DNA of 64,000 nucleotides, from contig CM075981.1 of NCBI GenBank assembly GCA_038087875.1, positions 20,336,001 through 20,400,000 on the forward strand, read 5' to 3'. Of this stretch, positions 11,622 through 64,000 are shown in pieces; within the stretch, counting starts at the first letter, position 1; each line of letters begins with the position of its first letter. The position numbers and the translations under genes are program-made. Below the pieces are notes generated by a model, which saw only the letters and a program-made list of their open reading frames with translations, had not been told where the DNA came from and searched no databases. The DNA is from Malacoraja senta (Eukaryota).

Positions 11622-12433
11622 ATGAATTGTTAACTACTTTTCTCTCTCCAGAGATGCAGATGGACAATTTGAAAGCTTTCCAACATTTCTGACTCTTGTG
11701 TAATATTGTCAGCAATATTTTATTGACCATGTGTGTCTTTGTGTGATCATCATTGATAAACCCAGCCGTGGATCATAGCAGTTTTGCAAATGTTCTTTAT
11801 GTTGAAGTAACACGCAACCTCACCACATCCCAGCCCTTCACTCCTGTCTCTGCTCACGTCTCTGCTCTGTGAGGGGTCATGTTTCAACAGTCTGAGAACC
11901 AATGGATCACAAAGGCAGAAAGTGTCTCTCTGGTTAACACACAACAAAAGCTATTCACGGTACCCTGGTACACGTGACAATAAACTAAAACTAAAAACTA
12001 AAACTAAATGGCTTAAAAAAAGACTCTGTGATCTGTTCATTTCAGTGGACATGACTGAAAATATATTTAGCACAGTTTGAATGTGAATTTACGCCCACTT
12101 TTCAGTTTGAGTCATTCTGGTAATTTAGCGTGTACTTGAGTTTGAAGAAGAGTCCCGAGCAAAAAAGTCACCTATCTGTTCCCTCCCCAAAAGCTGCCTG
12201 ACCTGCTGATTCCTCCAGCACCCTGTGATTTAAACTTCATGTGTGTTTTGTTTGAGCTGTCTACAAGGGCCATTTAAAAATTAAATATTTTTAGTTTTTC
12301 GTTTAGTTTAGTTTGGAGATACAGCACGGAAACAGTGATCAGTGACCAGTGGTCCCCACACATTAACACTATCCTACATATGTACACTAGGGATAATTTA
12401 CATTTATACCAAGCCAATTAGCCTACAAACCAA

Positions 12434-20557: not shown

Positions 20558-20641
20558 GATGTTGAATATAGCTGGTTACTCCTAACGGCTACTTTAAATT
20601 ATTTGTGAAAGTAAATAGATAATTTGGAATATTGGAATATA

Positions 20642-22258
20642 CAGTGGCTTGCAAAAGTATTCATACCCCTTGAACTTTTCCACATTTTGTCACGTTACAA
20701 CCACAAACGTAAATGTATTTTATTGGGATTTTATGTGATAGACCAATACAAAGTGGCGCATAATTGAGAAGTGGAAGGAAAATGATACATGGTTTTCAAA
20801 TTTTTTTACAAATAAAAAACTGAAAAGTGTTGCGTGCAAAAGTATTCAGCCCCCCTGAGTCAATACTTTGTAGAACCACCTTTTGCTGCAATTACAGCTG
20901 CAAGTCTTTTGTGGTATGTCTCTACCAGCTTTGCACATCTAGAGACTGAAATTTTTGCCCATTCTTCTTTGCAAAATAGCTCAAGCTCAGTCAGATTGGA
21001 TGGAGAGCGTCTGTGAACAGCAATTTTCAAGTCTTGCCAGAGATACTCAATTGGATTTAGGTCTGGACTTTGACTGGGCCATTCTAACACATGAATATGC
21101 TTTGATCTAAACCATTCCATTGTAGCTCTGGCTGTATGTTTAGGGTCATTGTCCTGCTGGAAGGCGAACCTCCGCCCCAGTCTCAAGTCTTTTGCAGACT
21201 CTAACCGGTTTTCTTCCAAGATTGCCCTGTATTTGGCTCCATCCATCTTCCCATCAACTCTGACCAGCTTCCCTGTCCCCGCTGAAGAAACGCATCCCCA
21301 CAGCATGATGCTGCCACCAACATGTTTCACAATGGGGATGGTGTGTTCAGGGTGATGTGCAGTGTTAGGTTTCCGCCACACATAGCGTTTTGCATTTAGG
21401 CCAAAAACTTCAATTTTGGTCTCATCTGACCAGAGCACCTTCCTCCACATGTTTGCTGTGTCCCCCACATGGCTTGTGGCCAACTGCAAACGGGACTTCT
21501 TATGGCTTTTTTTCAACAATGACTTTCTTCTTGCCACTCTTCCATAAAGGCCCGATTTGTGGAGTGCACGACTAATAGTTGTCCTGTGGACAGATTCTCC
21601 CACCTGAGCTGTGGATCTCTGCAGCTCCTCCAGAGCTACCATGGGCCTCTTGGCTGCTTCTCTGATCAATGCTCTCCTTGCCCGGCCTGTCAGTTTAGGT
21701 GGACGACCATGTCTTGGTAGGTTTGCAGTTGTGCCATACTCTTTCCATTTTCGCATGATGGATTGAACAGTGCTCCGTGAGATGTTCAAAGCTTGGGATA
21801 TTTGTTTATAACCTAACCCTGCTTTAAACTTCTCCACAACTTTATCCATGACCTGTCTGGTGTGTTCCTTGGGCTTCATGATGCTGTTTGTTCACTAATG
21901 TTCTCTGACAAACCTCTGAGGCCTTCACAGAACAGCTGTATTTATACTGAGATTAGATTACACACAAGTGGACTCTATTTACTAATTAGTTGACTTCTGA
22001 AGGCAATTGGTTGCACTGGATTTTATTTAGGGGTATCAGAGTAAAGGGGGCTGAATACTTTTGCACGCGACACTTTTCAGTTTTTTATTTGTAAAAAAAT
22101 TTGAAAACCATGTATCATTTTCCTTCCACTTCACAATTATGTGCCACTTTGTGTTGGTCTATCATATAAAATCCCAATAAAATACATTTACGTTTGTGGT
22201 TGTAACGTGACAAAATGTGGAAAAGTTCAAGGGGTATGAATACTTTTGCAAGCCACTG
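20642..22258 (-). mobile_element. Tc1/mariner DNA transposon copy 1, full length (1617 bp), Passport-like IR/DR type
   Basis: TA|CAGTGGC...GCCACTG|TA ends. About 212-bp TIRs, each with two copies of TGCAAAAGTATTCA. Carries an open transposase ORF. Confidence 0.97.
20860..21879 (-). CDS. Tc1 DD34E transposase (339 aa), copy 1
   Basis: Paired-like HTH N-terminus, GRPPK linker, WSDETK (D152), QQDNDPKH (D243), SPDLNPIE (E278). Several substitutions at conserved sites (e.g. KHVGG, YHKR). Confidence 0.93.
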   Translation of the reverse strand: MKPKEHTRQVMDKVVEKFKAGLGYKQISQALNISRSTVQSIMRKWKEYGTTANLPRHGRPPKLTGRARRALIREAAKRPMVALEELQRSTAQVGESVHRTTISRALHKSGLYGRVARRKSLLKKSHKKSRLQLATSHVGDTANMWRKVLWSDETKIEVFGLNAKRYVWRKPNTAHHPEHTIPIVKHVGGSIMLWGCVSSAGTGKLVRVDGKMDGAKYRAILEENRLESAKDLRLGRRFAFQQDNDPKHTARATMEWFRSKHIHVLEWPSQSPDLNPIEYLWQDLKIAVHRRSPSNLTELELFCKEEWAKISVSRCAKLVETYHKRLAAVIAAKGGSTKY

Positions 22259-23879
22259 TATGTCAGTAAGAGTCAAAAGGGTCCAGATTGTTTAATTCTT
22301 ATATGTACTGGCAATGGAACAATGACATTGTTCGGCCACGGTGGCGCAGCGGTAGAGTTGCTGCCTTACAGCGCTTGCAGCACCAGAAACCCGGGTTCGA
22401 TCCCGACTACGGGTGCTTCCTGTACAGAGTTTGTACGTTCTCCCCGTGACCGTGTGGGTTTTCTCCGAGATCTCCGGTTTCCTCCCACACTCCAAAGACG
22501 TACAGGTTTGTAGGTTAATTGGCCGATGGGCCTGTTTATGTGCTGTATTTCTAAACTAAACTAAACTTTTAGCAGTTAACAGGCCCATAATCTCAATAAC
22601 ATAGAGATAAATATAAAATAATCAAAAATACAATAAATTAATAATTCTGGGTAACCATCACCATGTGAAAAACTGAAGTGAGTCGTGCAACCAAAAACAC
22701 TCTCCATAGTAGATCATAGTTGCTGAGGTTAGTTTTGTGCACTGTTCGAGAGCCTGATGGTTGTACAATGTGTCCTTGTATGTAAGGCATTTAATTATCT
22801 TTTCTAACATACCATTACCAAGCCTACGTTTCATGGGAAATCGGTTGAACAATCCAGGCCAAGTGTTTCATTGAAAGCTGAGAAAATTAAAACCAGCATC
22901 ATCTCCAGGGATTAGTTGATGTTTCCGGTGTCAAATCTTTTATTAATTTCAACTGTGGATGGTTAATGTGGCTCCGAAAATATTTCTTTAAAATACATAC
23001 TTGCTAAAGCAAGTACTCGTTTTCCCCTTCTTTGAAGAAGCTTCATCCTGAGGTTAGATGAAATCTGGCAATCCTTATTCATCACGAAAATGAATGCATT
23101 TGAGATTCTAAACTGTTCAATATGATGAGGACGTCACAGCCCCGATCAGAATCATGTTGTCCTGTGTATTGGGAACGGATCTATGAGATTCTTACTTGCC
23201 TTGGCTTTGCAGGCCGTGGCTTTTTAACCTTTACCCTTTCACCTTAAACCTTTATCCTCTGGTTCTTGATTTCCCTACTTTCCCATGTGCATTCGCCCAA
23301 TCTATTCCCCTCATGATTTTATACACCTCTTCAAAATTACCCCTCTGCATCCTGCTCTCCGAGGAATAAAGTCCTAGCCTGCCCAACCTCTCCCTGTAGC
23401 TCAGGGCCTTGAGTCCTCACAACAACCTCAGTCTGCTATTAAAATCTCTCAAGGTATTAATAGCTGGATGTGGAACGAAGCAACAAGGATAATTGAACAC
23501 CTTAACCTAAGCAATGGTTGTACTATTGATTCTTTTATTCTTTATTCCAATCTGTTTCAACATGCCTGTCATAATTACTTGTTGGGAGAGATCAAGGCTA
23601 CTGTTGTATTCATTCAGTGCATGCGATGCTCCCGATGTGACCTGCTTTACATCGCCAAGAACATGCAAGAGCAGGCGACTATTTCGCCGAACACTTCCCC
23701 TTCCCCAACACTTACCCTCAGCCCACCAAGGCCTGCTGCATCCCAGTTGCCAACCATTCCCAACCAACTCCCCTTCCCATTCCCATATTCAATGGTTCAA
23801 TGGCAATTTATTTGTCACATGTACCCAGATACAGTGAAATTCAATTTTGTATACAGTTCAGTACAAGTATCATTATATA

Positions 23880-25496
23880 CAGTGGCTTGCAAAAGTATTC
23901 ATACCCCTTGAACTTTTCCACATTTTGTCACGTTACAACCACAAACGTAAATGTATTTTATTGGGATTTTATGTGATAGACCAACACAAAGTGGCGCATA
24001 ATTGTGAAGTGGAAGGAAAATGATACATGGTTTTCAAATTTTTTTACAAATAAAAAACTGAAAAGTGTCACGTGCAAAAGTATTCAGCCCCTTTTACTCT
24101 GATACCCCTAAATAAAATCCAGTGCAACCAATTGCCTTCAGAAGTCACCTAATTAGTAAATAGAGTCCACTTGTGTGTAGTCTAATCTCAGTATAAATAT
24201 AGCTGTTCTGCGAAGGCCTCAGAGGTTTGTTAGAGAACATTAGTGAACAAACAGCATCATGAAGCCCAAGGAACACACCAGACAGGTCATGGATAAAGTT
24301 GTGGAGAAGTTTAAAGCAGGGTTAGGTTATAAACAAATATCCCAAGCTTTGAACATCTCACGGAGCACTGTTCAATCCATCATCCGAAAATGGAAAGAGT
24401 ATGGCACAACTGCAAACCTACCAAGACATGGCCGTCCACCTAAACTGACAGGCCGGGCAAGGAGAGCATTGATCAGAGAAGCAGCCAAGAGGCCCATGGT
24501 AACTCTGGAGGAGCTGCAGAGATCCACAGCTCAGGTGGGAGAATCTGTCCACAGGACAACTATTAGTCATGCACTCCACAAATCGGGCCTTTATGGAAGA
24601 GTGGCAAGAAGAAAGCCATTGTTGAAAAAAAGCCATACGAAGTCCCGTTTGCAGTTTGCCACAAGCCATGTGGGGGACACAGCAAACATGTGGAGGAAGG
24701 TGCTCTGGTCAGATGAGACCAAAATTGAAGTTTTTGGCCTAAATGCAAAACGCTATGTGTGGCGGAAACCTAACACTGCACATCACCCTGAACACACCAT
24801 CCCCACTGTGAAACATGGTGGTGGCAGCATCATGCTGTGGGGATGCTTTTCTTCAGCAGGGACAGGGAAGCTGGTCAGAGTTGATGGGAAGATGGATGGA
24901 GCTAAATACAGGGCAATCTTGGAAGAAAACCTGTTAGAGTCTGCAAAAGACTTGAGACTGGGGCGGAGGTTCACCTTCCAGCAGGACAACGACCCTAAAC
25001 ATACAGCCAGAGCTACAATGGAATGGTTTAGATCAAAGCATATTCATGTGTTAGAATGGCCCAGTCAAAGTCCAGACCTAAATCCAATTGAGTATCTCTG
25101 GCAAGACTTGAAAATTGCTGTTCACAGACGCTCTCCATCCAATCTGACTGAGCTTGAGCTATTTTGCAAAGAAGAATGGGCAAAAATTTCAGTCTCTAGA
25201 TGTGCAAAGCTGGTAGAGACATACCCCAAAAGACTTGCAGCTGTAATTGCAGCAAAAGGTGGTTCTACAAAGTATTGACTCAGGGGGGCTGAATACTTTT
25301 GCACGTGACACTTTTCAGTTTTTTATTTGTAAAAAAATTTGAAAACCATGTATCATTTTCCTTCCACTTCACAATTATGCACCACTTTGTGTTGGTCTAT
25401 CACATAAAATCCCAATAAAATACATTTACGTTTGTGGTTGTAACGTGACAAAATGTGGAAAAGTTCAAGGGGTATGAAAACTTTTGCAAGCCACTG
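23880..25496 (+). mobile_element. Tc1/mariner DNA transposon copy 2, full length (1617 bp), Passport-like IR/DR type
   Basis: TA flanks at 23878-79 and 25497-98. TIRs at 23880-24091 and 25285-25496. Near-identical to copy 1 in the opposite orientation. Confidence 0.97.
24259..25278 (+). CDS. Tc1 DD34E transposase (339 aa), copy 2
   Basis: Open ORF with D152/D243/E278 (34-aa spacing), KHGGGSIMLWG and the C-terminal AAKGGSTKY. Confidence 0.95.
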   Translation: MKPKEHTRQVMDKVVEKFKAGLGYKQISQALNISRSTVQSIIRKWKEYGTTANLPRHGRPPKLTGRARRALIREAAKRPMVTLEELQRSTAQVGESVHRTTISHALHKSGLYGRVARRKPLLKKSHTKSRLQFATSHVGDTANMWRKVLWSDETKIEVFGLNAKRYVWRKPNTAHHPEHTIPTVKHGGGSIMLWGCFSSAGTGKLVRVDGKMDGAKYRAILEENLLESAKDLRLGRRFTFQQDNDPKHTARATMEWFRSKHIHVLEWPSQSPDLNPIEYLWQDLKIAVHRRSPSNLTELELFCKEEWAKISVSRCAKLVETYPKRLAAVIAAKGGSTKY

Positions 25497-27779
25497 TATA
25501 AGCACTGATACGCATATCTTAGCTAAGCATCTCAGATACAGTACGTATAGCAATAGTACACTAAGACAGTATACATAGATGCCAGTTTGGCACAATTTTC
25601 ATGTCCCAGTTGTAAGTGCAGGGTTCTTAACCTGACAGTGAAGGCCCGTTGTCCTGGTGACATTGGCTTGGCCTAGTGTAGCCGTTGGTGTCCTCTGCCA
25701 CTGCTCCACTCCTAGGCCTCTTGGAGTAGTGTCTGGTCCAGCTGAGCCCCAGGCCACTCCAATGTTGATGCAGTGCCTCATATTCCACTTGGGTAGCTTA
25801 CAACCCAAAGGTTTGAACAGTGAATTCTTCATTCTCAAGTAATACCTCCTCCCCTCCCTCTCTCCCACCTGCCCCTTCTCATCCTGGTACACACACATTT
25901 CCCACACCATCTCTCATCCCCCACACTCATCTTGCTCATTCCCATTCCTTCCCCCACTCACCTCCCATCCCAAATCCCATATTTCCCTTTCATCTCTCTT
26001 CTTTCCCCTCCCCCGTCCCCTTCCACCCATATCCCTTTCTACATTTCACTCCTCCTATTCCTTCCTTCTCTGACACCTTTTGTCTCTTTCACCTCCAGCC
26101 TTTGTCACTCACTCCACCCATCTGTCAATCCACACCTCAAGCATAATCAAGGACCAGTCCCACCCCAGTCATTTTCTCTTCTCCCCTCTCCCATCAGGCA
26201 AGAGGTATAGAAGTGTGAAAACGCACACCTCTAGATTCAAGGACAGCCGTTATCAGGCAACTGAACCATCCTATCAACAACTAGAGTGTGGTCTGAGGAA
26301 GGGTCTTGACCCAAAACGTCACCCATTCCTTCTCTCCAGAGATGCTGCCCATCCCGTTGAGTTACTCCAGCATTTTGTGTCTATCTTCGGTTTAAACCAG
26401 CATCTGCAGTTCCTTTCTACACATGTGGTCCTGACCTCCCATCTATCTAAATGGAGACCATCAAACTGTATTTAATTAGACATTACTGGACTTCATCTTA
26501 CACTGAATGTTATTCCTTTTATCCTGTATCTGTACGCTATGGATGGCTTGATTGTAATCATGTATAGTCTTTCCACTGACTGTTTAGCACACGACAAAAG
26601 CTTGTCACTGTACCTCGGTACGCCTGACAATAAACTAAACTAAACATTTTTAGCAATTATGACCGCAAGAGTGTAGAAAACATAACCAACCTGAAATTTT
26701 CAAAGAACGATAATTTTGCAATCTCCTTCATCAGCTGTTCTGATAATCACTGCATGCATGTTCAATCACAGGCACCAGGATTGGGGCGATCTTTCTTGGA
26801 ATCAGTTCCACGTGGAAGTTTAATCGAGAAAGCTTTACAGATCCCGACAGGTGACATGAATAGAACTCTTGCCAAAAGTATGCAGTAACTAGGCTGTGCT
26901 CGGTGCTACGTTCTGCATAATAATAATACATTTACCCGTTCACTCAACTGAGCTTTATTATAATAATATGTTTTTGAGATGTCATTAATCATTTATGCCT
27001 GCTCTCATTTAGGAATGTTATAAATTTCCAGGAGCTTTTGGGGCAGGGGACTGGCTCAGCGGTAGAGTTGCTGCCTCCGCACCAGAGACCCGGGTTCGAT
27101 CCTGACGACGGCTGCTGTCTGTACAGAGTTTGTACATACTCCCTGTGACCATGTGGGTTTTCCCTGGGTGCTCCGGTTTCCTCCCACACTCCCAAAGACG
27201 TACAGACTTGTAGGTTAATTGGTTTCGGTAAAATTGTAAATTATCCCTAGTGTGTAGGATAATGCGAGTGTGCGGGGTGATTGCTGGATAGCGCAGACTC
27301 GGTGGGCGAAGGGCCTGTTTCCGTGCTGTATCTCTAAAGTCTAAAGTAATATCAGAACTAGGGTCACTTTTGACAGAGCGGGGCAAAGAAATTCGTCTTA
27401 TTTTTCTGAATACCTCAGAAGCAGCAGAGTATAATGACCTGTTGGCAAAATATTTGGCTTATGTAATCAGCGGTCGTGTGATAATGTCTCATAGAGTTTT
27501 TTTACTATTCTGAAAGAATGGGGTTTGGCAATTTAAGAGTCATTCAGTCAGTATAACTATTGACTCGTGGAATCATTCATAACTGCTTTCAGAGAACTAT
27601 TTTAGTTTTATATACCACGCATGTTTAACATGAATATTTTTAGTTATGTTACTGATCTGTTTGATAAGCTGTTTGAAAAACACACAATGTAACAGGTTCC
27701 CTTTGATCAAAGGCACTGAAAAACTGCTGTGGGATTACAGCCCCTTTAGACTGCATCCTGGTACACAATTTCCTTCCAT

Positions 27780-31164: not shown

Positions 31165-31648
31165 ATAGTGAAGATGTTAGGCGAGGCCTAACATCGCCCG
31201 GCGCGGGTTAGCGGCCACGGGACTTACCATCGTCTGCCGGGGGCTTTAACATCGGAGCCCCAGTTCGCCTAGACGCTGCAGTTGGACTGCGGGTTGGACT
31301 GCTTGAACCGCGGGGTTTGAAGGACACGGAGCCGGGGCCTGGCATCGCCCGGTGTGGCTAAATGGCCACAGGACTTACCATCGTCCGCCGGGGGCTTTAA
31401 CACCGGAGCCCCAGTTAGCCTAGACGCTGCAGTTGGACTGCTGGACCGCGGGTGAAGAATAAAGGGAAGAGATAAGACTTTGCCTTCCATCACAGTGAGG
31501 AGGTGTTGGAGACTCACTGTGATGGATGTTTATGTAAACTGTGTTAAGTGTGGGTCTTGTTTTTTTTTGTAATGTAAAAAAAAACTGTAGTAATGATATT
31601 TCGTTCAAGCCTAGGTTTGAATGACAATAAAGAGCATTCTATTCTAAG
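31165..31648 (+). mobile_element. 5'-truncated copy of the GC-rich non-autonomous element, with an internal ~155-bp tandem duplication
   Basis: The unit catcgcccgg...ggacttaccatcg...gacgctgcagttggactgc occurs twice. 14-bp stem-loop at 31486-31526; tail at 31620-31648. Confidence 0.7.
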
Positions 31649-31649
31649 A

Positions 31650-32515
31650 TGGTTTTGAAAAATTGCAGCAGGATCTTGATCGGTTGGCCAGATGGGCTGA
31701 GGAATGGTTGATGGAATTTAATACAGAGAAACGTGAGGTGTTGCATTTTGGGAAGTCTAACATGGGCAGGACCTACACAGTGAATGTTAGGGCTCTGGAG
31801 AGTGTTGTAGAAGACAGGGATCTAGGAGGGCAGGTGCATGGTTCCTTGAAAGTGGAGTCGCAGGTAGATAGGGTGGTCAAAAAGGCTTTTTGCACATTGG
31901 CCTCCATCAGGCAGAGTATTGAATTTAGAAGTTGGGAGGTCATGTTGCAGTTGTATAAGACTTTGGTGAGGCCACATTCAAAGTATTCTGTTCAGTTCTG
32001 GGCACCATGTTATAGGAAAAATGTTGTCAAGTTGGGAAGGGTACAGAGAAGATTTACGAAAATGTTGCCACGACCAGAGGGTCTGAGCTATAGGGAGAGT
32101 TTGAGTAGGCTGAGACTCCATTCCTTGGAATGCAGGAGGATGAGGGGTGATCTTATTGAGATGTATAAAAGCATGAGAAGAATAGATCGGGTAGATGCAG
32201 AGTCTCTTGCCCAGAATGGGTGAATTGAGGACCAGACGACAAAGGTTTAAGGTGAAGGGGAAAAGATTTAATAGGAATCTGAGGGGTAACTTTTTCACAC
32301 AGAGGGTGGTGGGTATATGGAACAAGCTGCCAGAGGAGGTAGTTGAGGCAGGGACTATCCCAACGTTTAAGACACAGTTGGACAGGTACATGGGTAGGAC
32401 AGGTTTGGAGGGATATGGACCGAACGCGGTCAGGTGGGACTAGTGTAGCTGGGACATGTTGGCCTGTATGGACAAGTTGGGCTGAAGGGCCTGTTTCTAT
32501 GCTGTATCACTCTAC
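31650..32515 (+). mobile_element. CR1/HER1-like LINE 3' fragment
   Basis: LQQDLDRL..WAEEWLMEFN, VRPH..Y.VQFWAP, FFTQRVVGIWNKLPEEVVEAG, followed by the gggcctgtttc tail shared with the SINEs. Confidence 0.9.
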
Positions 32516-42568: not shown

Positions 42569-45449
42569 GTAAGTGAGTTGTACGATATTGAAGGCGGCTC
42601 AGCGGTAGAGTTGCTGCCTCACAGCACCAGTGCCCTGGGTTCGATCCTGACTACAGATGCTGCCTATTCGGAGTTTGCACGTTCTCCCTGAGACCACGTG
42701 GGTTTCCTCTGGCTTCTCCAGTTCCCTCCTACTCTCCAAAGATGCCCAGGTTTGTAGATTAATTGGCTTTGGTAAAACTGTCCCTCCTGTGCAGGATAAT
42801 ACTCGTGTGGGGGGTGATGGCTGGTCAAAGCAGACTCGGTGGGTCAAAGGGCTTGTTTCCATGCTGTATCTCTAAAGTAAAGTAAATAAAATGCCACATT
42901 GCAAAAGGAAACCCCATTCTGAGTATCTGTTTGAAGGGATTTATCATAGATTTGTCACAGGAGCAACACAACATGTGGCTCGAGTTAGTTTTGTATGATC
43001 ACTTCCACAATCACCACATTTAAATCTTGTCACCCAGCATATGAACTGCATTTCCCTGAAAAGCCACATCAATAATCATTGCAGATTGAAAAAAAAATAA
43101 CTTTGTAACACTGGGATTTTTTTTAAATAATTGTGCATAAGGGGGGGTTGTTAACAGTTCTAACACACTTCTCCTAAATCATCACCAATTTCCTCAGGTG
43201 TCATCCAATATGGATCCACAGTTTCCTCCACTCTCACTCAGCGTCCTTAATGCTCAGTAAATCAAACAAGGAATTACTCTCAAGTTTAAAGGAGATGTGC
43301 AGAGCAAGTTTTTACCCAGAGGGTGTTGAGTTTTTACTCAGAGTGTTAGTAAGTAAATTTTATTTATATAGCACGTTTAAATGAACTCGCATTGAAACCA
43401 AAGTGCTTTACATAGAAGAAATAATTAAGTTTCCGTACATCCATAGAAAAATTTAAAAAAAGAAAAATGACACAACACATTATAGAATTCAACATGAACG
43501 TCCCCCCACAGCAGAATCAAAATTTTCCACTGTGGGGAAAGGCACCAGAAAGTTCATTCCTCTTCCTCTGTGATCACCCGAGGTCAGGGCCTATTTGTGC
43601 TGCCAGGGGTGGTGGTGGAGGCAGATACAAATGTGACATTTAACAGGCTTGTGGATAGGCACATGGATATGCAGGGAATGGAGGGATATGGATCACGAGC
43701 AGGCAGATAAGAGATGGTCTTGGCATCATGTCGGCATAGACATTGTGTGCCGAAGGGCCTTTTCATGTGCTGTGCTTGTCGATGTTCAGCATTCTATCAT
43801 TTTAGAGTTTTAGTTTTAGAGATACAGCATGGAAACAAACCCTTTGGCCTACTGAGTCTGCGATGACCTTCAATCATCCCGTACACTAGTTCTATCCCAC
43901 ACACTAGGGACAATTTTTACAGAAGTCAATTAACCTACAAACGTGCACGTCTTTGGAATGTGGCAGGAAACTGGAGCACCTGGAGCACCTGGAGCAAACC
44001 TACTCAGTCACAGGAAGAACGTGCAAACAGCACCAGTGGTCGGAATTAAACACGGGTCCTTGGCGCTGTAAGGCAGCAACTCTACTGCTGTATAAATGTG
44101 ACACCTACAATGTTCTGTGTTCAAATGCTATCATTAAAAGAGTCAGCCAGGCAAGGTTTCTTGAAAAGGCTTAAGGTAGAATCACTACCCTCGGTAGGCC
44201 CTGGTGAATAAAAGCACACTATTTCTATGTTAAAGTCCCTGATAATTGGGCATTTTTATGTGCAGCGATGTCTTGCACCTGGATCATCTGTGGCCAAAAT
44301 GTGGCTGGAAATCCCTTACAGAAAGGAAACAAATAATTGAAAGGTTCTCCCAGTGGGTTGAAGCCCCATTAAAGTTGAGAGCACGGGGAGAGAGGACCCT
44401 GTGACCTTCCTGTGGATGGTTCGGTGCAAGGGGCCAACAGATTTCAGTTTGCAGATTCCCCAGGTCCCATTCCTTGAGTGAGGAAGGACTTTACCCGTTG
44501 CCTTCTGGCCTCACTTCCCGCTGCTCGCTGCTGCTGTTAAAGAGGTCTGGCCAGAACGTTGATGGATCATCACCTTGCTACTTGACCCCAGCAGCTTCCT
44601 GCCAGTAATGGAAGTCGCTTGACTGAGTAAATGGTTCTGCTGCAGTTCTCCAGCGACCGTGTCACTCCACTGGCCCATTCTTTATGTGTAACCCGGACAT
44701 TTTATCAGCTGGTTATTTGATGGCGAGGGAAGAGGATGGACACCACTAGACAAGCCTGTCGCTGATGATTAGGTTTAGGTTTATTATTGTCACGTGCACC
44801 GAGGTACAGTGAAAAGCTTTGTCTTGCTTGCTATCCAAACAGATCAGATCTACTGTACATAAAGACAATCAAGTACAGTAGGTAGTGCAAAAGTGAAGAT
44901 ACAGAGTGCACATAATAGTTTTAGTTTAGTTTAGAGATACAGCATGGAAACGGGCCCCAACAGTCCACAGACCAGCGATCCCCGTACACACTATCCTACA
45001 CACTAGGGACAATTTATACTATTTTTTACTGAAGCCAATTAATCTACAAACCCTCACATCTCTGGGCTGTGGGAGGAAACCTGAGCACCCAGGGAAAACC
45101 TCCTGAGCACCCAGGGAAAACCCATGCGGTCACAGGGAGAATGTACAAACTCCATACAGATGGCACTTGTAGTCAGGCAGCAACTCTACCATTGCGCCAC
45201 TGTGCCATTCCCTTAATTGTTAGCATTGTACAAAATATCATTGGAACATTTAGAAAAGGTGCTATGCTTACAGGTAGAAAAGAGATTTGAAAGTCTAGGG
45301 AGAAAGAGGGACAATTGCAATGTGTGGTGTCTAAATTCAACACAAGGAGAATGCAGCTGAAAGGCAGGCCATTTGCTACATGGTTCCTTCTGGCCTCCAT
45401 GCAAAGATGCAAAGTGCTGGAGTAACTCAGCAGGTCAGGCAGCATGGAT

Positions 45450-45485: not shown

Positions 45486-48400
45486 GACAGGAAACATATA
45501 AAATTGGACACGCTAGATGCAGGAAACATGTTCCCGATGTTGGGGGAGTCCAGAACCCAGGGCTACAGTTTAAGAACAAGGGGTAGGCCATTTAGAACTG
45601 AGATGAGGAAAAACGTTTTCACACCAAGAGTTGTGATTTTGTGGAATTCTCTGCCACAGAAGGCAGTGTAGGCTGATTCACTGGATATGGGGAGAAGGCA
45701 GGAATGGGGTACTGATTATGGATGATCAGCCATGATCACATTGACTGGTGGTGCTGGCTCGAAGGGCCGAATGGCCTACTCCTGCACCTTTTGTCTATGT
45801 ATCTATGTATCACCTATCCATGGATGTATCTATGTATCACCTATCCAGAGATGCTGCCTGGCCCGCTAGGTTACTCCCACACTTTGATTTTTTTGCTCAA
45901 GCTTCCTGCATCTGCAGTTTCTTGTGTCTCCGGATAAGACAGGAGTCAGCCAGGAGAGCAGTAAAGAGGTCAGGGCTGGAGGTCACGATGCTATTGATGA
46001 AGGTTTCAGAACAAGATTGGTGGAGACAGCTGGGCAATGTTTCAGAGGCAAAGGTGGGCTGTGTTGTTTAACGAGAGGATATCGGGTCAGGAGTATAGCT
46101 CGGGATAAAACAGATACCGAAGAATCTGGTTCAATGCTCTTTGCCAGAGTATCTTTATTTGAATAATCCAATTCCTGGCTGGAAGCTACAACTGAAGCTG
46201 TCCCACTCCTCCTCCACAATCAACGTCATGTGTCGAAAAGAGATCTCTCATCTCCCATCTTGTTCTTTGGCAAGTCTTCTTCAATGTCTGCCCTCGGGTG
46301 ACCAAACCTCCTGCCAAAAACAGTTGTTTTTTCCTCGTTGGACTTACTCACTGGCAACTCTTTGCAGCAGAAACGAGATTTGAAATGGGGACTTGACTGA
46401 ATTGCCTTCCCCACCCTCACAAATGCTCGCCGTTTCTGGCAAACCTGCAGCTGAGAGCGATTAACTGGACACAGTTAAAGGACTCAACCAGTGAATTCCC
46501 TCATAAGAGTGGCTCATTTCTACAAAGGTTAGGCATTAGCTCAATGAACCGTAGGTGAAGCGATTACATACCCATTTACTTTACATAAGGAATGTATGTA
46601 ATCAAGCTGTAGGTATGTTTTAGGACGTAGAAGAGTTTTGCCCCAGAATTATAGAACTAACCTTGCTCCCAGTTCACACGACAGATTTGCCAACAACAAC
46701 TCTTCCAAAACTGTACCTTCACCTTTGACCCTTGTATTATGAATAGTTGTGTTAACACCTGGTAATGCTTAACTATTGATATGTTAATTACCATGTACGC
46801 CTCAATTGACACCTTTTCTACTGCCATATGAATCTAATCTTGGTTTGATAAATGTGCAGAATTTGACAGAGTGACTTTGGTAATCCAATAATAACTCCTT
46901 TGGTAATTCTAACATATTATGATGCATATTGCTGGCCATTGAGCCAACATTAAATGATATAATGTATGAGCGACAGTGCCTTAGTGCTCAAACTCCTGAT
47001 CCTGAAACACACTCGAACCATCTGGAGAGTTCAAGGCGTGTCAGCAGGAGAATTTAAATTCACTTTGCTAAATAAATAAACAATAAAAGCTCCTATAATG
47101 GTGGCCATCAAGCTACTGTTTTGTTATAAAACTTGTCCATTTTGCTAATGTTCTTTCGGGGACCTCTGCCCTCTTGACCTGGGAATGGACAAATTGTGAT
47201 TCCAGACCTGCTGTGGTGACGGTGCCTTTTAACTTCTCTGAAATGCCCTGGCAAGGTGTTTAATTTAAGGGAAGCCCCCAGCATTTGTAATGAACAAATG
47301 CTGCCGGACCTGCTGAGTTCCTCCAGCACTTTGTGTTTTACTCAAGATTCCAGCAGCTGCAGTTCTGTGTGTCTCCAAAAGAAAGTGCCCAGTGAAGAGT
47401 GGTTGGGGCTGTGAAATCATTGGAATTCCATTTATTGTTTTTATGGGATTTCCCACTGTTCCATTGCAGGAGAAATATTTCATTTTGGCACCAGCATTAC
47501 AAACACTTGCTGGTTCCGAACAGAAATAAATAAAAGCTTTGTGGTTTTGTAACAAAGCTCACCCGCAGTTGGTCAACGTAATCCCTTGGTGTTTATATGA
47601 TGAGGAGTGGAAGGTCACTGCCCACGTTTCCTGAGATGTTTTTCTAAAGCAAACAATGATTCAAGATTCCTATCGCCAATAAACTTCTTCAATGCCAGAA
47701 ACTCTGGCCGGATGGAGTTTGTTTGATAACCTTTCCAGTTTTCTCACAATCCCGCAAGTCATTCGTTTCTCGAAATTAATCTTTTTTTTTTAATGGGCAT
47801 AGTTAACGTTTATTTCCCATTCATTGTTACTTTTGTCACAGTGGCCTTGAGCTATCTTCCTGCCTCTGCCTTTGGTGAAGCAGTCTCTGCAGCGGTGTGG
47901 AGCTGATAAATCTCGGATGTTGACCCAGTAACATCAGAGGGATAGCAAAGTGTATCTAAATGGCATCAATGAGTCACTGGGAGAGGAACTTGCAGACAAT
48001 GGTGTCTCCGTGCGCCAACTGCCCTTATCCTGCTAGCTCAACATTTCTCAAACTGTTTTCTACGCTCTCAATCCATTTTACGTTTGCAGAATCCATGCAA
48101 CTTATTCCTGTGCACCCATTTTGAAAAAAATGTCTCCGGGTATTCTGACAGTAAAACAATAATGTGTAGAAAGGAACTGCAGATCCTGGTTCACACCGAA
48201 GATAAAATGCTGGAGTAACTCCTGGTCTGAAGAAGGGTCTTGAACCTTAAGGTCACCTATTCCTTTTCTCCAAAGATGCGGTAAAACAATAATAATCAAT
48301 ATACTCTAGACACAAAGTGCTGGAATAGCTCAACATGTCAGGCTGCATGCCTGGAGTACATGGATAGGTGATGTTTCGGATCTGAAGAAAGGTCCTGACT

Positions 48401-49832: not shown

Positions 49833-51386
49833 GTGAGGCTGAGATTTGCTGCAAAATCACTGCTTTAAGGTTGTAAATCTTTACTCAGTTCAAACTGTAC
49901 GATGTTTATACGTTTCCCTGTTACGGCGTGGGTTTCCCCCGGGTGCCCCTGTTTCCTCCCACACTCCAAAGACGTACAAGCTTGCAGGTGAATTGGCCGG
50001 TAAAATTGTAAATTCTCCCTAGTGTGTAGGATATTGCTAGTGTAAGGGGATTGTTGGTCAGCGCAGACACAGTGGCCTGTTTCCATGCTGTATCTTTAAA
50101 GTCTAAATGTCAAGAGTCAGTGACAGAAGTTAATTAAAAGATTTAAAAGCAATTGCAATTCAAAGTCATGCTGCACGGAAATAGACCCTTCAGCCCCATT
50201 TGTCCATGCTGACCAAGGTGCCCCATCTGAGCTAGACCCGTTTGCCCACATTTGGTCCAGATCCCTCTAAACATTTCCTATCCATGTACCTGTCTAAATG
50301 TCTTCTAAATGCTGTTATGGTACCTACTTCAACTGCCTCCTCTGGCAGCTCGTTCCATACTCCCACAACCCGTCATGTCTGATCTCAAGAACCATTGCCT
50401 TACAAACGTTAGAAGAGGAAGGCTCCCACAGGGCTCCATGACCTCCAGGGCAGCCGGCGCTGAGTGAGATCCGAGTCCCTGGAGGTCGGAACGAGGTGGA
50501 CGGGCCGCGCCGCCGAAAGCAAAGAGGGACCCGGCGTGGGGGGGGGGGGGGCGCCGAGAACAAAGAAGGACCATTGTGACTACATTGAACACTTTGTAAC
50601 TTTGTCAGCGCTCTATACGTGGTGACTCTTTGCATACTTTGTGTATTGTCTGCAAAACATAGAATTTCACCGTGACTTGTCACATGTGATAATAAAGCAC
50701 CTTTCATTCAATAAAGTATCATTCAGTCCATCGTTCAGAATCAGATTATTTTATTAGTTTATTGCTAAGAGGCTTTTAGATAGGCACATGGATATGCAGA
50801 GAATGGAAGGATATGGGTCATGTACATCAAGGTGCAATGAATTCCTTGTACACCTGAAGCTTGTTCCATATACCCACCACCCTCTGTACAGAGTTTGCAC
50901 GTTCTCCCTGTAACCGTGTGGGTTTTCTCCGGGTGCTCTGGTTTCATCCCACATTCCAAAGACGCGCAGTTTGTAGATTAATTGGCTTCTGTAAATTGTC
51001 CCTAGTGTGTAGGATAGAACTAGTGTACAGGTGATCGATGGTCAGCATGGACTCAGTGGGCCGAAGGCCCTGTTTCCATACTGCAACTTTAACACTCAGA
51101 GGATTGTGGGTATATGGAACGAGCTGCCAGAGGAGGTAGTTGAGGCAGATACTGTAACAACATTTAAAAGACACTTGGACAGGTACATGAAGAGGAAAGG
51201 TTTAGAGGGATATGGCCAAACGTAGGCAGGTGGGGCTAGTGTAAATGGGGCTTCTTGGTTGGCATGGACGAGTTGGGTCGAAGGGCCTGTTTCCATGCTG
51301 TATGATGCAATATATTTTATTCATATTTTTAACATTTGTACCAAAACTACGTGGGGTCACAATACCTGCTGTGCTTTTCTCTTCAG

Positions 51387-51529
51387 ATGCCAAGTTTATC
51401 GGGATGTACCTCATTGCTGACACCTCTGATGACGACGATGATAAAATCTATGTGTTTTTACGAGAGACAGCTGTGGACACAGCTGGCACTGAGAGAGCCA
51501 TCTACTCCAGAGTGGCCCGAGTCTGTAAG
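51387..51529 (+). CDS. sema3d-like: SEMA3D-like coding exon 7
   Basis: cttttctcttcag| acceptor, aag|gttggt donor, 143 nt. (D)AKFIGMYLIADTSDDDDDKIYVFLRETAVDTAGTERAIYSRVARVCK contains the DDKIY.F.RE and SRVARVCK motifs. The next exon was not found in the window. Confidence 0.96.
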
Positions 51530-56500: not shown

Positions 56501-59154
56501 ACACCCGCCCTCCCCCCTGCCCCCCCCTTGTGCCCCACCTGGATGGAGCTATTTATCCCCTCCCCCTCCTCTTCATCTTACATTCCTTCCTCTTCATAAT
56601 TTCTTTCGCTTCATAATTTGCAACTCTTCAATCCTTTTGTCTCATACCTGCCTTTTAATCTCTGCCCTTTATCTGACCAGCTGCCCCATCTTCAGCTGTA
56701 TCAGCCTAATACCCTCCACCCTTTGTCCTGCCCCTGCTCTCTTCCAGTTTTCCTCACTCCGCCCCTCCACAATTAGCCTGAAGAATGGTCTCGACCCAAA
56801 ATGTCACCTATTCATGTTCTCCAGAGATGCTGCCTGACCTGTTGAGTTACACCAGCACTTTGTGTCAACTTTTTAACCTACGTGGTTCAAAACTAGATGG
56901 ACTACTAGTTTAGGAAGGACAGCTGCAGGTTAGATGTGAATGCCCTCTCTCCCTCCGTCTCCACTCCCCCCATGAAGTTGTAAATTCTTGGATTCAATAC
57001 TCTGCACAAGATTCAAGATGAATTGCCATACGTGCCGACAACGGAACAATGACATTCTTACCTGCAGCAGCTTAACAAGCCCGTAAACACAATACACATA
57101 GATAATAAACAATAAATTAAAGTTAAAAAAGTTAATAACTACAATACTTGTGCAAAAAGCATTAGTAGTCCTTAGTGCGACCAAAGAATGTCCGTAGAAG
57201 TGCATAGTCGAGGATAGTGTTGTGTGGTGTTCAAAAGCCTGATGGTCGTCTGGTAGAAGCTGTTCCAAGACCTGGTAGTCACAAAGCATTCTCAACATTT
57301 TAAGTCTAAGATGTTCTCTCTAAAAACAGTAGATTTCCCCTTGTGTCTCACTTTACGGTTGTAACCGCCCTTAAATTGGAACGAGTGCAGGGAAGATTTA
57401 TGAGGACTCGAAGGGTTGAGCTACAGTGAGAGGTTGGGCAGGCTAGAACTTTATTCCTTGAAGTTCAGGAAGATGAGGGTGATCTTCCAGGGGTGTATAC
57501 AATCATGAGGGGAATAGATGGGAGTGAATACAATGTATCCAGAGTACAATACAATACAATACAATACAATACGGTTTTATTCGTCACATTGCACATAAAG
57601 TGCAAGTGAAATGAATTTGCCAGCAGCGGTACAATGAGAAAGAACACACAAAAACACAATAAAAAGTTAACACAAACATCCACCACAGCATTCATCACTG
57701 TGGTGTAAGGCACAACATTTGGCCAGTCCTCCTCCATTTTCCCCCGTGGTCAGGACCTCGAGTATGGGAATCAAGTACTAAAGGGCATCGTTTTAAGGTG
57801 AGAGGGGAAAGATTTAATGGGAAAATAAGGGGCAACCTTTTCACACAGAGGGTAGTGGGTATACAGTATGTAATGAGCTGCCAGAAAGGGGTAGAAGAGG
57901 TAGGGATATTAACAACATCTCAAAGACATTTATTATATGTACATGGATAGGAAAGGCTTACAGGGATATGGGCCAAATATGGTCAATGAGCACAAGCTTA
58001 GATCGGGTCAGTACAAAGGAGTTGGGCCTGTTTCCATTCCGTATGACTATGGTGCTAAAGTGAATTTGCTAGGATTAACTAGGATTAACCTCACTAGGTT
58101 GCCAATCCTGCAACAAACTTTCAAACAGTGCAGTGATTATTCCTTGGTGAATTATGCTCATTTCTATTCATAAGATGTTCGGAGAAATGAAAACATATTC
58201 ACAGGTTAAGGACAACATCAGAATCCAAAGCCAACCTAAATGTTAAACACAAAATCTTTATCCTCCCCCTTGCTGCCTCTTTCCTTGGAAGTCCACTGTA
58301 CTTTAGAAGCTGCACTAACTGTGGTACTTCTGTGACTGATATATTGTTTCAGTACTTTGTCATGGACAAGTAGATAGGAATATTGGATAGATTTATGGAC
58401 TAAACTTGGAACCGCACCGGAGGCTCGTGAAGGGTCATTGGCATTCCATGTAAGTTATTTGTGAAGTTTTAAAGCGTTTCCACATGTCAGTGGAACCTTG
58501 CAGAGCCTCGGTGAAACAGGCAGGATCCTGTCCTTGTTCAAACACTGGAGCACCAAGTGCTTGACCTGCAAAATGTCATAAAACTCATTTTATAATGGCT
58601 AAGCATTTCTGCCTGTCCTGGATAATTGTGGTCAATTGAACTTGCTTTTTAATGTATTTAATTGCTCTCAATTGGAACAGCTCGGGTCAACCTCACTAGT
58701 TTGACAATTAGGACATGAGATCAGAACACATCGGAGCAGAATTAGACCATTCGGCCCATCGAGTCTACTCCACCATTCAATCACGGCTGATCTATGTTTC
58801 CATCTCAACCCCATTCTCCTGCCTTCTCCCCATAAACCTTTGACAACTAATCAAGAATGATATGACAATGAATTCCATACATTCACCACCCCATTCTAAA
58901 GGTGCGTCCTTCCATTCTGAGGCTGTCCCCTCTGATCCTAGACTCCCACTAATGGAAATGTCCTCTCCACATCCAGTCTATCTAGGCCTAACATGGAACA
59001 ATACAGCACAGGAACAGGCCCCACGCGGGCACCTCTCCAAATATTAAAATTTATGGATTGAAGAGTCAAGGAAAGCGGGTGTAAGTAGGGAGTTATTTTC
59101 CTACTTGGAGAACTGCCAGAGGAAGCTGTAGAGTGGATAGGACTTTTAAAAGAC

Positions 59155-59403: not shown

Positions 59404-61251
59404 GCCAACCCGGATGGCAAGGACAAAGTGCATTGAAGAATCTGTTTCCGTGCTGATTGAAGAAGGGCGCTAACCAGAAACGTTGCCCATCCATATTCCC
59501 CACAGATGCTGCCTGACCCGCTGAGTTACTCCAGCACATTGCGTCTTCTTCCGTGCTGTGCCGCTCAATGACACTTTTCTCAAGTAATCAGCTATTTTAT
59601 GCTGTCGGTGACACCTCAGATCACTCGCTTGCTTTTCACAGAAGCGCTATCAGACCTTTTGCATCCTCCTGTATGAGTAATTGGCTCCTTCACTTGGCAT
59701 CTTATTTGCTGGGCAACTGTGCAGATGTTCTTTGTCAGTCGGTCCGCCCAAAAATACCACCCCAAAGCCAACTCCTCCACCTCCAGAGTTCATTTGATTA
59801 AAGTCAATGGAATAAACATTGGAGGTGGACTGATGGTCAGAAGACAGTTATATGGCACCAATTGCACTGAAGTTCGACTCCAGCACCTTCAACATTACGG
59901 TGACTTCTCAGATGTGCATTGGATTGTTACATTTACAAGTCCATGGAGAATACTTTGAATCAGAACTGCAGAGCTCAACATCAAGTGTGGTGGCCAAGTG
60001 AGTCTCATTTGAAAAGTGTCTGAAGAGATTTAAATTCCTCCATTTTCCAGAAAATCAAATCTGTTGTGAATGAAAATTAATTTTCCTTTCTGTGCTCCAA
60101 ATTTCCTGCCATAGTCCAGTGTGATTGACTTCTCTGGAAAAGGGAACCTAGAGCCCAAATGTCACAAAATAAATGTCTAACATTCAATGTACTATCTTGT
60201 GCTCCAGTGACTCAGTCCTTGGTGTTGACTGCATTATAACTCATCTCTGAACTCTCCATGTTCCAAGTTACAAATATTGCATAGATCTGAATGAGTTAGA
60301 GTGAGTAATTGCTGCAAAGTGAGGTCTACTCAGGTTGAGTTTATTGAAAGAATGAACTATAAAGCTATTGAACACTATGAACTACAAACTGAAGATGGAC
60401 ACAAAATGCTGGAGTAACTCAGCGGGACAGGCAGCATCTCTGGATGGAAGGAATGGGTGAAGTTTCAGGTCGAGAGCCTTCTTCAGACTGAGCGTCAGGG
60501 AAGAGAGAGTTACAGAGATAAAGAAGTGAACAAGATCAAAAGAGAAGAAAATCAGGGAAAATGTACAATCGACCATGGTTAGCTCAGAGGTGACAACCTT
60601 CTCACGGTACTCAAAGCTTCTCAAAGCTTTTCACAGTATGGTTCACCAGGGGCGGGCCCAGTACTCACGCCGCCTTTATGCTGCTCGCTCTGTCCACTCC
60701 CACCAACCAGTAGCTGGTGGGTGGGTGCGGGGGGGGGGGAGGGGGGTGAAGGGGGAAGCGAGAAACCTGCTACATAGAGATCCGTTATTGCAAGGGATTA
60801 CTGTACACATATATTATAGATATGCCAACTGTGGAGAATTGGTCAATATCTTTTTTATAATTACATCAGGATTAAGTGTTTAATTTTTGGTATTCACAGT
60901 CTGAATTAGTTTCAACACTACGTAGCTTTTAAAAACCAGCTAAAAATGGTGAATACCTAGATTACAGTATGAATATATGTGTAGAATTACATCTAGATAT
61001 CCAAATCAATTATCAACATTTGAGATGTCTTAGTTCTGATGTGAATTAGTAACTTGACATTAATTTCTGATCTCACTGTGTGTGGGTGGATTGCGTTTCA
61101 GTCATTACAAGCCCCAATTGCACTGAGCTGACTGTTTGTACAAGGCGCGTACTTGACATACTTGGAAACTGGAGAGCAACCAATTCTCACGTCGACTTTC
61201 ACTATTCAATGTTACAGAGCCAGGAATCTCCAAAACCACAGGGAAGGTCAA

Positions 61252-62060
61252 TGATAGAATAGAATAGAATAGAATAGAATGCCTTTTATTGTCATTCAAA
61301 CAGCTTGGTTTGAACGAAATTGCATATTCTACAGTCTTACATTACAAAAACCCCAAGACCCACACTTAACATAGTTTACACAAACATACATCACAGTGAA
61401 TCTCCAACACCTCCTCACTGTGATGGAAGGCAAAAGTCTTATCTCTTCACTTTGTTCTTCTCCCGCGGTCCAGCAGTCCAACTGCAACGTCGAGGTGACT
61501 GGGGCTCACGATGTTAAAGTCCCGGCGGGCGATGGTAAGTCCCGCATCCGTTAAGCCGCGCCGGGCGATGTTAGGCCCGCTCCAAGTCATTTAAACCCCG
61601 CGATTCCAGCGGGAGAATTTGCCGTTGCTGGAGCTCCGAAAAGCGGTCTTCCACCAGGGACCTGCGAGTTCCCGATGTTCCTGTCCACCGGGCCTGTGGC
61701 CGGAGCCTCTGAAGCTCCGAAGTCAGGTCGCAGCCCCGCCACAGCTCTTCCCGTTACGAAGATGGCCAGCTCCACGATGGCTGGTCCGCAGGCTCCGCGA
61801 CTGGAGCCCTTAGGTTGGGCCCGGCCGGAGGCCGTCGCCGGCTCCACAATGTTAGGCCCAACGACATCGGAGACCCAACAGGGAAAAAGTCGGGTCCCCG
61901 TACAGGGAATAGATTAACGGTTTCCCCCACCCACCATATATACACAGCTAAAGAAAAATAATAAAAATTAGAGCCAAGACATACATTTAACGAGACAAAA
62001 ATAAAAAAAAAGACAGACGGACTGTAGTTGAGCCGCTGCCATTAGGCGCCGCCTCACCAC
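61252..62060 (-). mobile_element. GC-rich non-autonomous retroelement (~0.8 kb, no ORF homology recognised)
   Basis: Homologous to 31165-31648 (+). CpG-rich body, internal stem-loop, and a tgacaataaa + (ttcta)n tail. Confidence 0.7.
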
Positions 62061-64000
62061 ATGATAGACGTCAAAATAATGATTCCATGCCTTTGTTTGA
62101 CCTGGGTACTGTCCAAATGTACTCTAATAACTTGCCACAGTTATCCACCTTCTTCCCCTACTTTCCTGCTGTAAAATGTAAATTCTTGCAAAATAGAATC
62201 ATAAAACAGTTATGGCCTGTGACAGACCTTAAGCTTCATATGGTCTGCCCATAAGGTTCATGCTAGCTCTCTGTAGAATAATTCATTCGGTTGCATATCT
62301 CTGCTCTTTTCATAAAGAATGTCATTCTTCTGTTACAGGTACATGTGACTATTAGGTCTTGATTCTTGGCCCGTGAAGTCCTGCAAATGGCCTCTCCAAC
62401 TCTGGACGACCTAATTGCCCCTATTTTCACCATTCTTCCATGCAGTGAATTCTAGATAATAAAACTTGTTGCGTCCTCCTATTTTTTAAATCAAAAATCA
62501 TTAGTTCTTTCACTATTGCAGAATGAAGCATTTACGTCCAGTGTCTTCAGACAAGTCTAATGCACAACTGATTTATGAAAGCTAATCCGATTATACATTA
62601 CTGTCTATCAAACTATCCATGTTATCTATCCTTAGAGAAAGTCCAATGTTTTATTTTGGGCAAATTGCAGCTATAACTGAGCCAGCAAGATTCTCAAGTA
62701 GATGAGAATTGGGATAAGGAATGCTGGCTACGTTGTTGTGTCTTGGAGCGATGGGACAGGCAACCATTCCAACATTTCATTTCACTGGTGCCATCACAGA
62801 AAAGGTCTTGGCATTGGAGTTTTCTACCAATAACTCTCCAAAGTTCAAAACATTCCTCCACTTTTATTCAATATTTCTTAATTCCTGCGTAAGCAATTTT
62901 TCATTCCTTCATGCAAATTGATAATGAATAGAGTGACAAGTTTCCAGATTAGATTGATGGAGAATATTATTGTTCAGATATTCTCAAGAACATTTTAATT
63001 AATTTTTCAACCCACTGCCGCAACATTATCTTTAATAATGTGAACAGTCATTTTTACTAATGTTCTTCTGTCAAAATCTTACAGCCTGATTTTTAGAAGT
63101 TTATAGATTGTCATCTTTCCTAAACTTTCCTACATCCACCAAGCTAGTAATCAAAAGGGAGAACATAGAACAGTACAGCACAGTATTAGGCCATTCGGCC
63201 CACGATGTCCATGCTGAACGAGATGCTAAGCGAGGAGGGTAGAGATAGATGAGATTGGTCTGTTTGGAGCTGGCATGAATCCGATATACCAAATGACCTC
63301 CATTGTGGCATGGTAGGTAGGTACCAGGCAAGTCCCACACTCCCACAAACACTATTTACTGACCTTTAAAAACACAAAGTGCTGGAGGAACTCAGAGGGT
63401 CAGGCAGCATCTGTGGAAGGAATGGACAGGCGATGTTTCAGGTCGGGACCCTTCTTCAGACTGGTGGAGTAGGGGGGCGAAAGCTGGAAAAGAAAGGTGT
63501 CCACTGGAATTTAAAAAACATGAGAATAGCCTAGTTATCCTGCCGCAGTCCATCACAGGTACTGACCTCCCCAACATCAAAGGGATCAACTGGAGTCACC
63601 GCCTTAATAAGGCAGCCAGCATCATCAGAAACCCACACCACCCTGGTCTCACTCGCATTTCATTCCAGCCATCGGGAAGAAGGTATAGGAGCCTGAAAAC
63701 TGTAACATCCAGGTTCAGGAACAGCTTCTTCCCTTCGATCATCAGACTATTAATCATTACAAACTCCAAATAGGCTTCAAAACAAAGATCTTAGAGCAGA
63801 TGATCTTTGCTCCAAACTATATAAACTTTGGGACACTGTTTTGTCTTTGCACTACGATTGTTTGCGTGGTTTTTACTGAACTTTTTCAGCCGTTTATTAC
63901 AGTGTTTACAGAGTAATATGTTTACATATCTGTTGTGCTGCTGCAAGTAAGAATTTCATTGCTCCATTTCGGGACATATGACAATAAAACACTCTCAACT

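Follow-up and report, generated by a model that had tools for sequence, protein, structure and literature searches.

The 64-kb stretch of skate DNA analysed here (the window, at its full length) carries four insertions that share one conserved core with a compensated hairpin. Our best explanation, to which we give a probability of roughly 0.6, is that they belong to a group of skate retroposons that are headless, lack open reading frames (ORFs), depend on LINEs for their copying and are structured at the RNA level, the core being a selected, cis-acting RNA module. The four insertions are old, gene-less mobile elements, and are listed here with the handles used below.

31177 to 31645, plus strand: c31k, a 5'-truncated member of the long family, inside the ORF of a CR1-type LINE.
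~43348 to 43593, minus strand: c43k, a short element that starts at the core and has a tail type of its own.
57547 to 57759, minus strand: c57k, a short element that starts at the core, inside the C-terminal region of a CR1-type LINE.
61257 to 62060, minus strand: c61k, the longest copy, 804 bp and non-coding.

The preliminary description had reported four insertions with a common core. All four lie where it had placed them, and the core, approximately 110 nt long, is homologous among them. As locations, its insertion boundaries also held, with small corrections to the exact ends of c31k, c43k and c61k. Target-site duplications were checked in three of the four window copies. AAGATG flanks c31k (31171-31176 and 31646-31651), TATCAT flanks c61k (62061-62066 and 61251-61256), and c57k is bordered by TACTC on the minus strand, which is GAGTA on the plus strand. 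Taken with their LINE-type tails, these three duplications (AAGATG, TATCAT and TACTC) are what LINE-mediated insertion leaves behind. When c31k was excised in silico, the reverse transcriptase (RT) frame of the CR1-type host was restored, reading ...DSEDGFEKLQQDLDRL..., and the excision of c57k likewise restored the frame of its CR1 host. The host of c43k is another repeat. Its 5' edge was set against a paralogous copy of that host repeat, with an uncertainty of about 6 nt, and this comparison made no clear target-site duplication visible. Finally, c31k, which shares 84% identity with c61k over 351 nt, is a 5'-truncated relative of this longest copy.

The search for copies covered 196 kb, that is, the 64-kb window and 132 kb from seven other loci, the latter being DNA around transposable-element proteins in Leucoraja erinacea, Pristis pectinata and two ENA assemblies. 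Five copies were obtained, all from skates: the four in the window and one in the 132 kb, which lies in the public L. erinacea assembly (L001:13600-14005, minus strand). Profile and covariance-model (CM) searches detected no further core copy within the window, and a CM search detected none in the 21 kb of Pristis. The hosts in which the core was seen are the present skate and L. erinacea only (n = 5 copies). Weak extra matches at 14011, 27701, 47200-47480, L003:5218 and L004:16987 were rejected, as by eye they were chance or CR1 sequence. A 24-base core pattern, which matches four of the five known copies, had 0 matches in the JGI metagenomes, in 596 Gb of prokaryotic genomes (GTDB) and in IMG/VR. 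Searching for copies via spurious ORFs of the element returned no candidates, and the tail motifs, when sought in published text, returned unrelated primers only. In keeping with the skate origin of the window, its CR1-type RT ORF is 88-93% identical to L. erinacea proteins, and its CR1 DNA is 93-97% identical to L. erinacea loci.

Several other features of the sampled DNA were observed along the way. Copies of a Tc1 transposase occur in the window (20639-22260 and 23878-25499) and in an ENA contig (L005:1055-2676, 9621-11260 and 17765-19385). Teleost proteins (Oreochromis, Pygocentrus) match the transposase of the window at 88-91% identity, and among its best 120 matches, several of which are ENA or Logan contigs, there is no named skate protein. 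Its DNA is 95-98% identical to the three copies of the ENA contig, where CR1 is only ~80% like that of the window; this pattern of similarity agrees with a possible horizontal acquisition of Tc1. A second ENA contig contains what is by appearance a near full-length CR1-group LINE (L006:6344-11050, minus strand), with an ORF1 that has a GDSL-lipase/OSK-type domain, an endonuclease and an RT, and this LINE is a possible reference for the ends of skate LINEs. Finally, positions 51260-51400 of the window (plus strand) form an exon-like stretch that encodes a semaphorin-type peptide (...KIYVFLRETAVDTAGTERAIYSRVARVCK) and is followed by GT. If this is a semaphorin exon, the insertions are intronic and three of the four are antisense to the gene.

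We then compared the insertions with one another. From 5' to 3', the core consists of GACC-N-CGGG, a purine-rich tract, TGCCTT, a hairpin with invariant CACAG/CTGTG, and GGA(T/C)GTT-N-TGT, the last of which reads GGATGTT-N-TGT at the 3' end of the c31k core. Its extents in the two long-family copies of the window are as follows.

31436 to 31548, plus strand: core of c31k (alignment A2; 124 bits in CM R1).
61366 to 61478, minus strand: core of c61k (alignment A2; 124.8 bits in CM R1).

A long-family profile was trained on c31k, c61k and the L. erinacea copy only. Searched with nhmmer, this profile gave c57k (E=2.5e-7) and c43k (E=0.046) as the best other matches in the window. With c57k as the sole query, c43k was found at E=1e-6 and c61k at E=3e-6, and the query c43k in turn found c57k at E=1.4e-6. 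Thus three diverged families carry the core according to both nhmmer and the covariance models, and the shared similarity is beyond chance. Plain BLASTN misses the links between the families because the conserved blocks are short and broken by loops of unequal length. A simple motif of the core, TGCCTT-N4-CACAG, occurs eight times in the window, where 1.7 occurrences would be expected; four of the eight are the copies. Conservation of the core exceeds that of the flanks; flanks and loops show 25-55% identity or are unalignable. In addition, c57k and c43k, which belong to different subfamilies, begin identically with (G/T)AGG(T/C)CCTGACC. This common start argues for a defined 5' end over random truncation, on a basis of two copies.

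Whereas the short elements start at the core, the long family has more sequence beyond it, namely a GC-rich, VNTR-like region and an AT-rich 5' part. In c61k the order from 5' to 3' is an AT- or T-rich part, a GC-rich middle, the core, a T-run and the tail. In c31k the repeated region is the following.

31179 to 31444, plus strand: GC-rich, VNTR-like unit of 151 bp, present twice upstream of the c31k core (two 115-nt copies, 87% identical, at a spacing of 151 bp).

The VNTR-like unit of the L. erinacea copy is 45-51 bp long and is present three times. Within the GC-rich repeat unit of the long family, upstream of the core, its 5' motif CTGGA(C/A)(C/T)CGCGGG occurs once more (31300-31325, and 61600-61625 on the minus strand), and the VNTR may have incorporated part of the core. 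We also considered the 5' 170 nt of c61k as a partial duplicate of the 3' flank of the core, and rejected it, as 28 of 300 shuffles scored as high.

The tails of the window copies have the following parts.

31601 to 31645, plus strand: tail of c31k, with the hairpin TTCAAGCC/GGTTTGAA, the box TGACAATAAA (31622-31631) and (ATTCT)2.
43348 to 43395, minus strand: tail of c43k, with an AGCAC...GTGCT stem (AGCAC...GTGCTATATAAATAAA), the box TATATAAATAAA and (TTAC)2.
57547 to 57612, minus strand: tail of c57k, with the hairpin TTGCAC/GTGCAA closed by TCAC/GTGA, the box TGACGAATAAA (57576-57586) and (TATTG)5.
61257 to 61316, minus strand: tail of c61k, with the hairpin TTCAAAC/GTTTGAA, the box TGACAATAAA (61285-61294) and (ATTCT)5.

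Every tail contains AATAAA. Overall, the tails of c31k, c61k, c57k and the L. erinacea copy read AATTTC, a hairpin closed by TCA../..TGA, TGAC(A/G)ATAAA and a microsatellite. The inner stems (TTCAAGCC, TTCAAAC, TTCAGACC and TTGCAC) differ, and so do the microsatellites. In these four copies the tail hairpin, 6-11 bp long, adjoins TGAC(A/G)ATAAA, so that a stem-loop stands directly upstream of the terminal repeats as in tails of the stringent type. These tails are variants of a single tail type. The tail type of c43k is the sole example in 129 kb, and we take it to resemble the L2-type tails of DeuSINEs. Of the different LINE tails claimed in the preliminary description, the separate type of c43k was thus borne out; for c31k, c61k and c57k the claim had to be withdrawn, since they have one architecture in which only the inner stem and the microsatellite vary. 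There is one real change of tail type, in one copy (c43k).

The same hairpin and TGAC(A/G)ATAAA also end other retroposons (11930-12008, 26580-26645, 63935-64000, 23760-23817 on the minus strand, and L002:19345-19450 on the minus strand). The microsatellites on the tails of other families include (CTAAA)n, (ACACTCT..)n and (TTGCCATTGAAC)n. One tail type therefore serves many non-autonomous families of this genome, the HE1-like elements and others.

In Rex1 elements the 3'UTR is conserved and leads into oligonucleotide repeats that vary (PMC6274825), a published description that fits the shared tail type of c31k, c61k, c57k and the L. erinacea copy, and the genome coverage of Rex1 peaks in Batomorphi, the rays (PMC13343379). 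The core could be a conserved part of the 3'UTR of one Rex1-type LINE lineage, the copies being LINEs that are 5'-truncated or internally deleted (SIDE-like), with no module kept across switches. Besides the abundance of Rex1 in rays and the suitability of four of the five tails, the fact that c31k is plainly a 5'-truncated c61k would agree with such an origin. We nevertheless consider it unlikely: c61k inserted as a complete element of 804 bp, is flanked by a target-site duplication and shows no ORF2 remnant, the HE1-like SINEs lack the core although their tail is of the same type, c57k and c43k share their start nucleotide where random truncation predicts otherwise, and the tail of c43k is of another type. 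Against our main explanation, in turn, examination of all RT-like fragments in the 196 kb revealed no partner LINE with these Rex1- or L2-type tails. All of the ~60 LINE fragments seen there have short CR1-type ends without the core.

Next, the elements were examined for a head and for coding capacity. The observation in the preliminary description that the longest copy has no obvious tRNA head was confirmed with ARAGORN and Rfam. ARAGORN detected no tRNA-like gene in the window, and Rfam gave nothing at gathering scores and nothing at E<=10 over c57k, c43k and c61k. A classical SINE head for RNA polymerase III (Pol III) of the tRNA, 5S or 7SL kind is thus absent, which places the elements outside SINEs in the strict sense. 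No RT homology, Pfam domain or ORF2 remnant was found in c61k. Between core and tail, every copy has a run of T5-T9 within a T-rich stretch, and such internal T-runs in every copy argue against Pol III. With no Pol III head and with T-runs inside the copies, transcription by Pol II is suggested. We also asked whether c57k and c43k start with a ribozyme, HDV-like or other, and rejected this, as Rfam had no match at E<=10 and the candidate P1 pairing of c57k was, by eye, lost in c43k.

The absence of a head also bears on whether the core is a described SINE domain or part of a catalogued family. It might be a piece of the vertebrate Deu-domain of SacSINE1-like elements, with c43k as a truncated DeuSINE, an interpretation with which the apparent likeness of its tail to those of Deu-L2 SINEs would agree. 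The length of the vertebrate Deu-domain (~330 bp; PMC4824008) and the L. erinacea SacSINE1-like elements, 185-425 bp long with an L2-type tail (PMC5499810), point in the same direction. However, a tRNA-like head is present in none of the five copies, the 5' end of c43k is that of c57k, where it is fixed by the target-site duplication, and the core model does not match the V-SINE-like (HE1-like) copies of the window. We therefore regard a Deu or other catalogued origin as rather improbable.

SINE superfamilies are defined by a conserved central domain, as in the CORE-, V-, Deu-, Ceph- and MetaSINEs (PMC4824008, PMC5499810). By description, the present group resembles them in that an internal segment (~60-110 nt) is common to diverged non-autonomous retroposons, while the LINE tails vary. 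On the other hand, members of the SINE superfamilies bear a tRNA or 5S Pol III head and occur across phyla, whereas the present group is headless, has internal T-runs and a core with a covarying hairpin, and occurs in skates only (n=5). The HE1-like (CTAAA)n copies of the window share the tail architecture of our elements (a hairpin closed by TCA/TGA, TGACAATAAA and a microsatellite), with GTACC/GGTAC as the inner stem. By contrast, they have a tRNA-like head and no match to the present core. From their sequence, read together with the published account of HE1, we take these copies to be V-SINEs. HE1 itself is described as a V-SINE of sharks and rays (PMC4824008). Neither the core profile nor the CM had a significant match to the HE1-like copies of the window, which places the core apart from the V-domain.

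Two further systems are comparable. Kajikawa and Okada reportedly found in 2002, for UnaL2/UnaSINE1 of the eel, that the reverse transcriptase recognises a 3' stem-loop adjoining short repeats (the stringent type). As in UnaL2/UnaSINE1, the tail hairpin of our elements immediately precedes the terminal repeats, and its stem shows covariation from one subfamily to another; its recognition by a skate LINE enzyme is putative. Unlike the eel elements, which have no equivalent of it, ours carry a core hairpin at a distance of 90-120 nt upstream of the tail. SVA is trans-mobilised by L1 (PMC3287187), and the SIDEs of CR1 (cited in PMC11481361) are internally deleted LINEs. Like SVA and SIDEs, the present elements have no coding capacity and no Pol III head and need a LINE enzyme, and they have a GC-rich VNTR-like region (with the 151-bp unit in c31k and the 45-51-bp unit in L. 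erinacea). They differ in their structured CR1-group tail, which is not poly(A), and a LINE origin by internal deletion is for them only a candidate.

We then quantified how well the hairpin is conserved. For the five cores, RNAalifold yielded a single helix of 14 pairs, and a hairpin was predicted in each copy. In the window it is placed as follows.

31486 to 31526, plus strand: core hairpin of c31k, a 14-bp stem with a 13-nt loop (RNAfold, RNAalifold and pair counts).
43502 to 43539, minus strand: core hairpin of c43k, CCCCACAG/CTGTGGGG extended by UGGAA/UUCUG.
57681 to 57705, minus strand: core hairpin of c57k, a 9-bp stem with a 7-nt loop.
61387 to 61427, minus strand: core hairpin of c61k, whose 3' arm bears two point changes.

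Over the five copies, seven of the 14 pairs are invariant; in three only one partner varied, and in four both partners changed. Of the stem cells, 97% are paired, and shifting the 3' partners by 1-3 columns lowers this to 31-57%. The stems had been described earlier as varying while staying paired, and the numbers agree with this, including the 14-bp stem at 31486-31526 as it had been quoted. Between 4 and 29 of 500 shuffles reached the observed pairing counts, a control that is not a probability, since kin sequences can beat shuffles without any structure. The covariation is drawn from five sequences in three or four lineages. For example, the L. erinacea stem TCCACCACAG.../...CTGTGGTGGA, compared with TCCATCACAG.../...CTGTGATGGA in c31k, has C-G in place of the U-A of c31k and c61k, and the rest of the stem is identical.

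The preliminary description had proposed a covariance model as a check. We built two CMs from the long family only, one with and one without the hairpin, leaving out c57k and c43k. With the hairpin, CM R2 recovered both left-out copies, c57k at 40.0 bits (E=5.5e-6) and c43k at 22.9 bits (E=0.011), and they were the top two CM matches outside the long family. Without structure, the scores were 29.4 bits for c57k and 10.7 bits for c43k, so that the hairpin contributed a gain of 10.6 and 12.2 bits respectively. The best unrelated CM matches had 11.8 and 7.8 bits. The structure is thus kept also in copies on which the model had not been trained. As for the earlier proposal of a conserved RNA module retained across LINE switches, the homologous, structured module is upheld, while the plural switches shrink to one tail change in one copy.

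It is very improbable that the hairpin is functionless, the three families having simply inherited from one ancestor a palindrome that has not yet decayed, with paired changes that are chance. In favour of this, the sequences are few, half of the pairs never vary, and relatedness alone can beat shuffles, which are not a probability; against it, the stem is 97% paired with four double changes while flanks and loops are 25-55% identical or unalignable, and structure adds 10-12 bits for the left-out copies.

The invariant part of the stem, CACAGTG/CACTGTG, found at 31490-31496 and 31516-31522 and at the corresponding positions of the other copies, is identical to the heptamer consensus of V(D)J recombination signals. 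This match is probably a coincidence; by eye there is no nonamer at 12 or 23 bp.

How might a headless, LINE-dependent retroposon with such a core work? The elements, with no tRNA, 5S or 7SL head, would be non-autonomous. Judging from their anatomy and from known stringent-type pairs, they would be copied in trans by reverse transcriptases of CR1-group LINEs that recognise the 3' tail with its hairpin and repeats, a tail presumably of Rex1 type in the long family and c57k and L2-like in c43k. Transcription would most likely be by Pol II, either through read-through from the host sequence or from an internal promoter, and the AATAAA box may help to set the 3' end. The compensatory changes indicate that the core was kept by selection on master copies, in which it would act in cis as an RNA module, while the loops, the flanks and the tails around it diverged or were swapped. 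Our best guess for its role is that it helps to assemble or stabilise the RNA for the LINE protein.

A bolder form of this reading, which we offer tentatively and think doubtful at present, is that the elements represent an undescribed superfamily of batoids, headless and transcribed by Pol II, in which the hairpin is required in cis and Rex1-type and L2-type tails are swapped. The short forms of ~215-250 nt would start at the core, and the long forms of 0.8 kb would add a VNTR-rich 5' part. In such a superfamily the hairpin might, for instance, load or protect the RNA for retrotransposition.

That SINEs possess conserved central domains has been known since 1999, and what these domains do has yet to be explained. 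The conserved module described here is a simple hairpin with compensatory changes, in elements without a Pol III head, and this makes a structural RNA requirement directly testable. Among LINE-dependent retroposons the elements are an unusual variant, headless and built around a conserved core with RNA structure. If they prove widespread in rays and have several LINE partners, they would add a headless class to the picture of SINE superfamilies and would help to annotate the sizeable fraction of unknown repeats in skate genomes.
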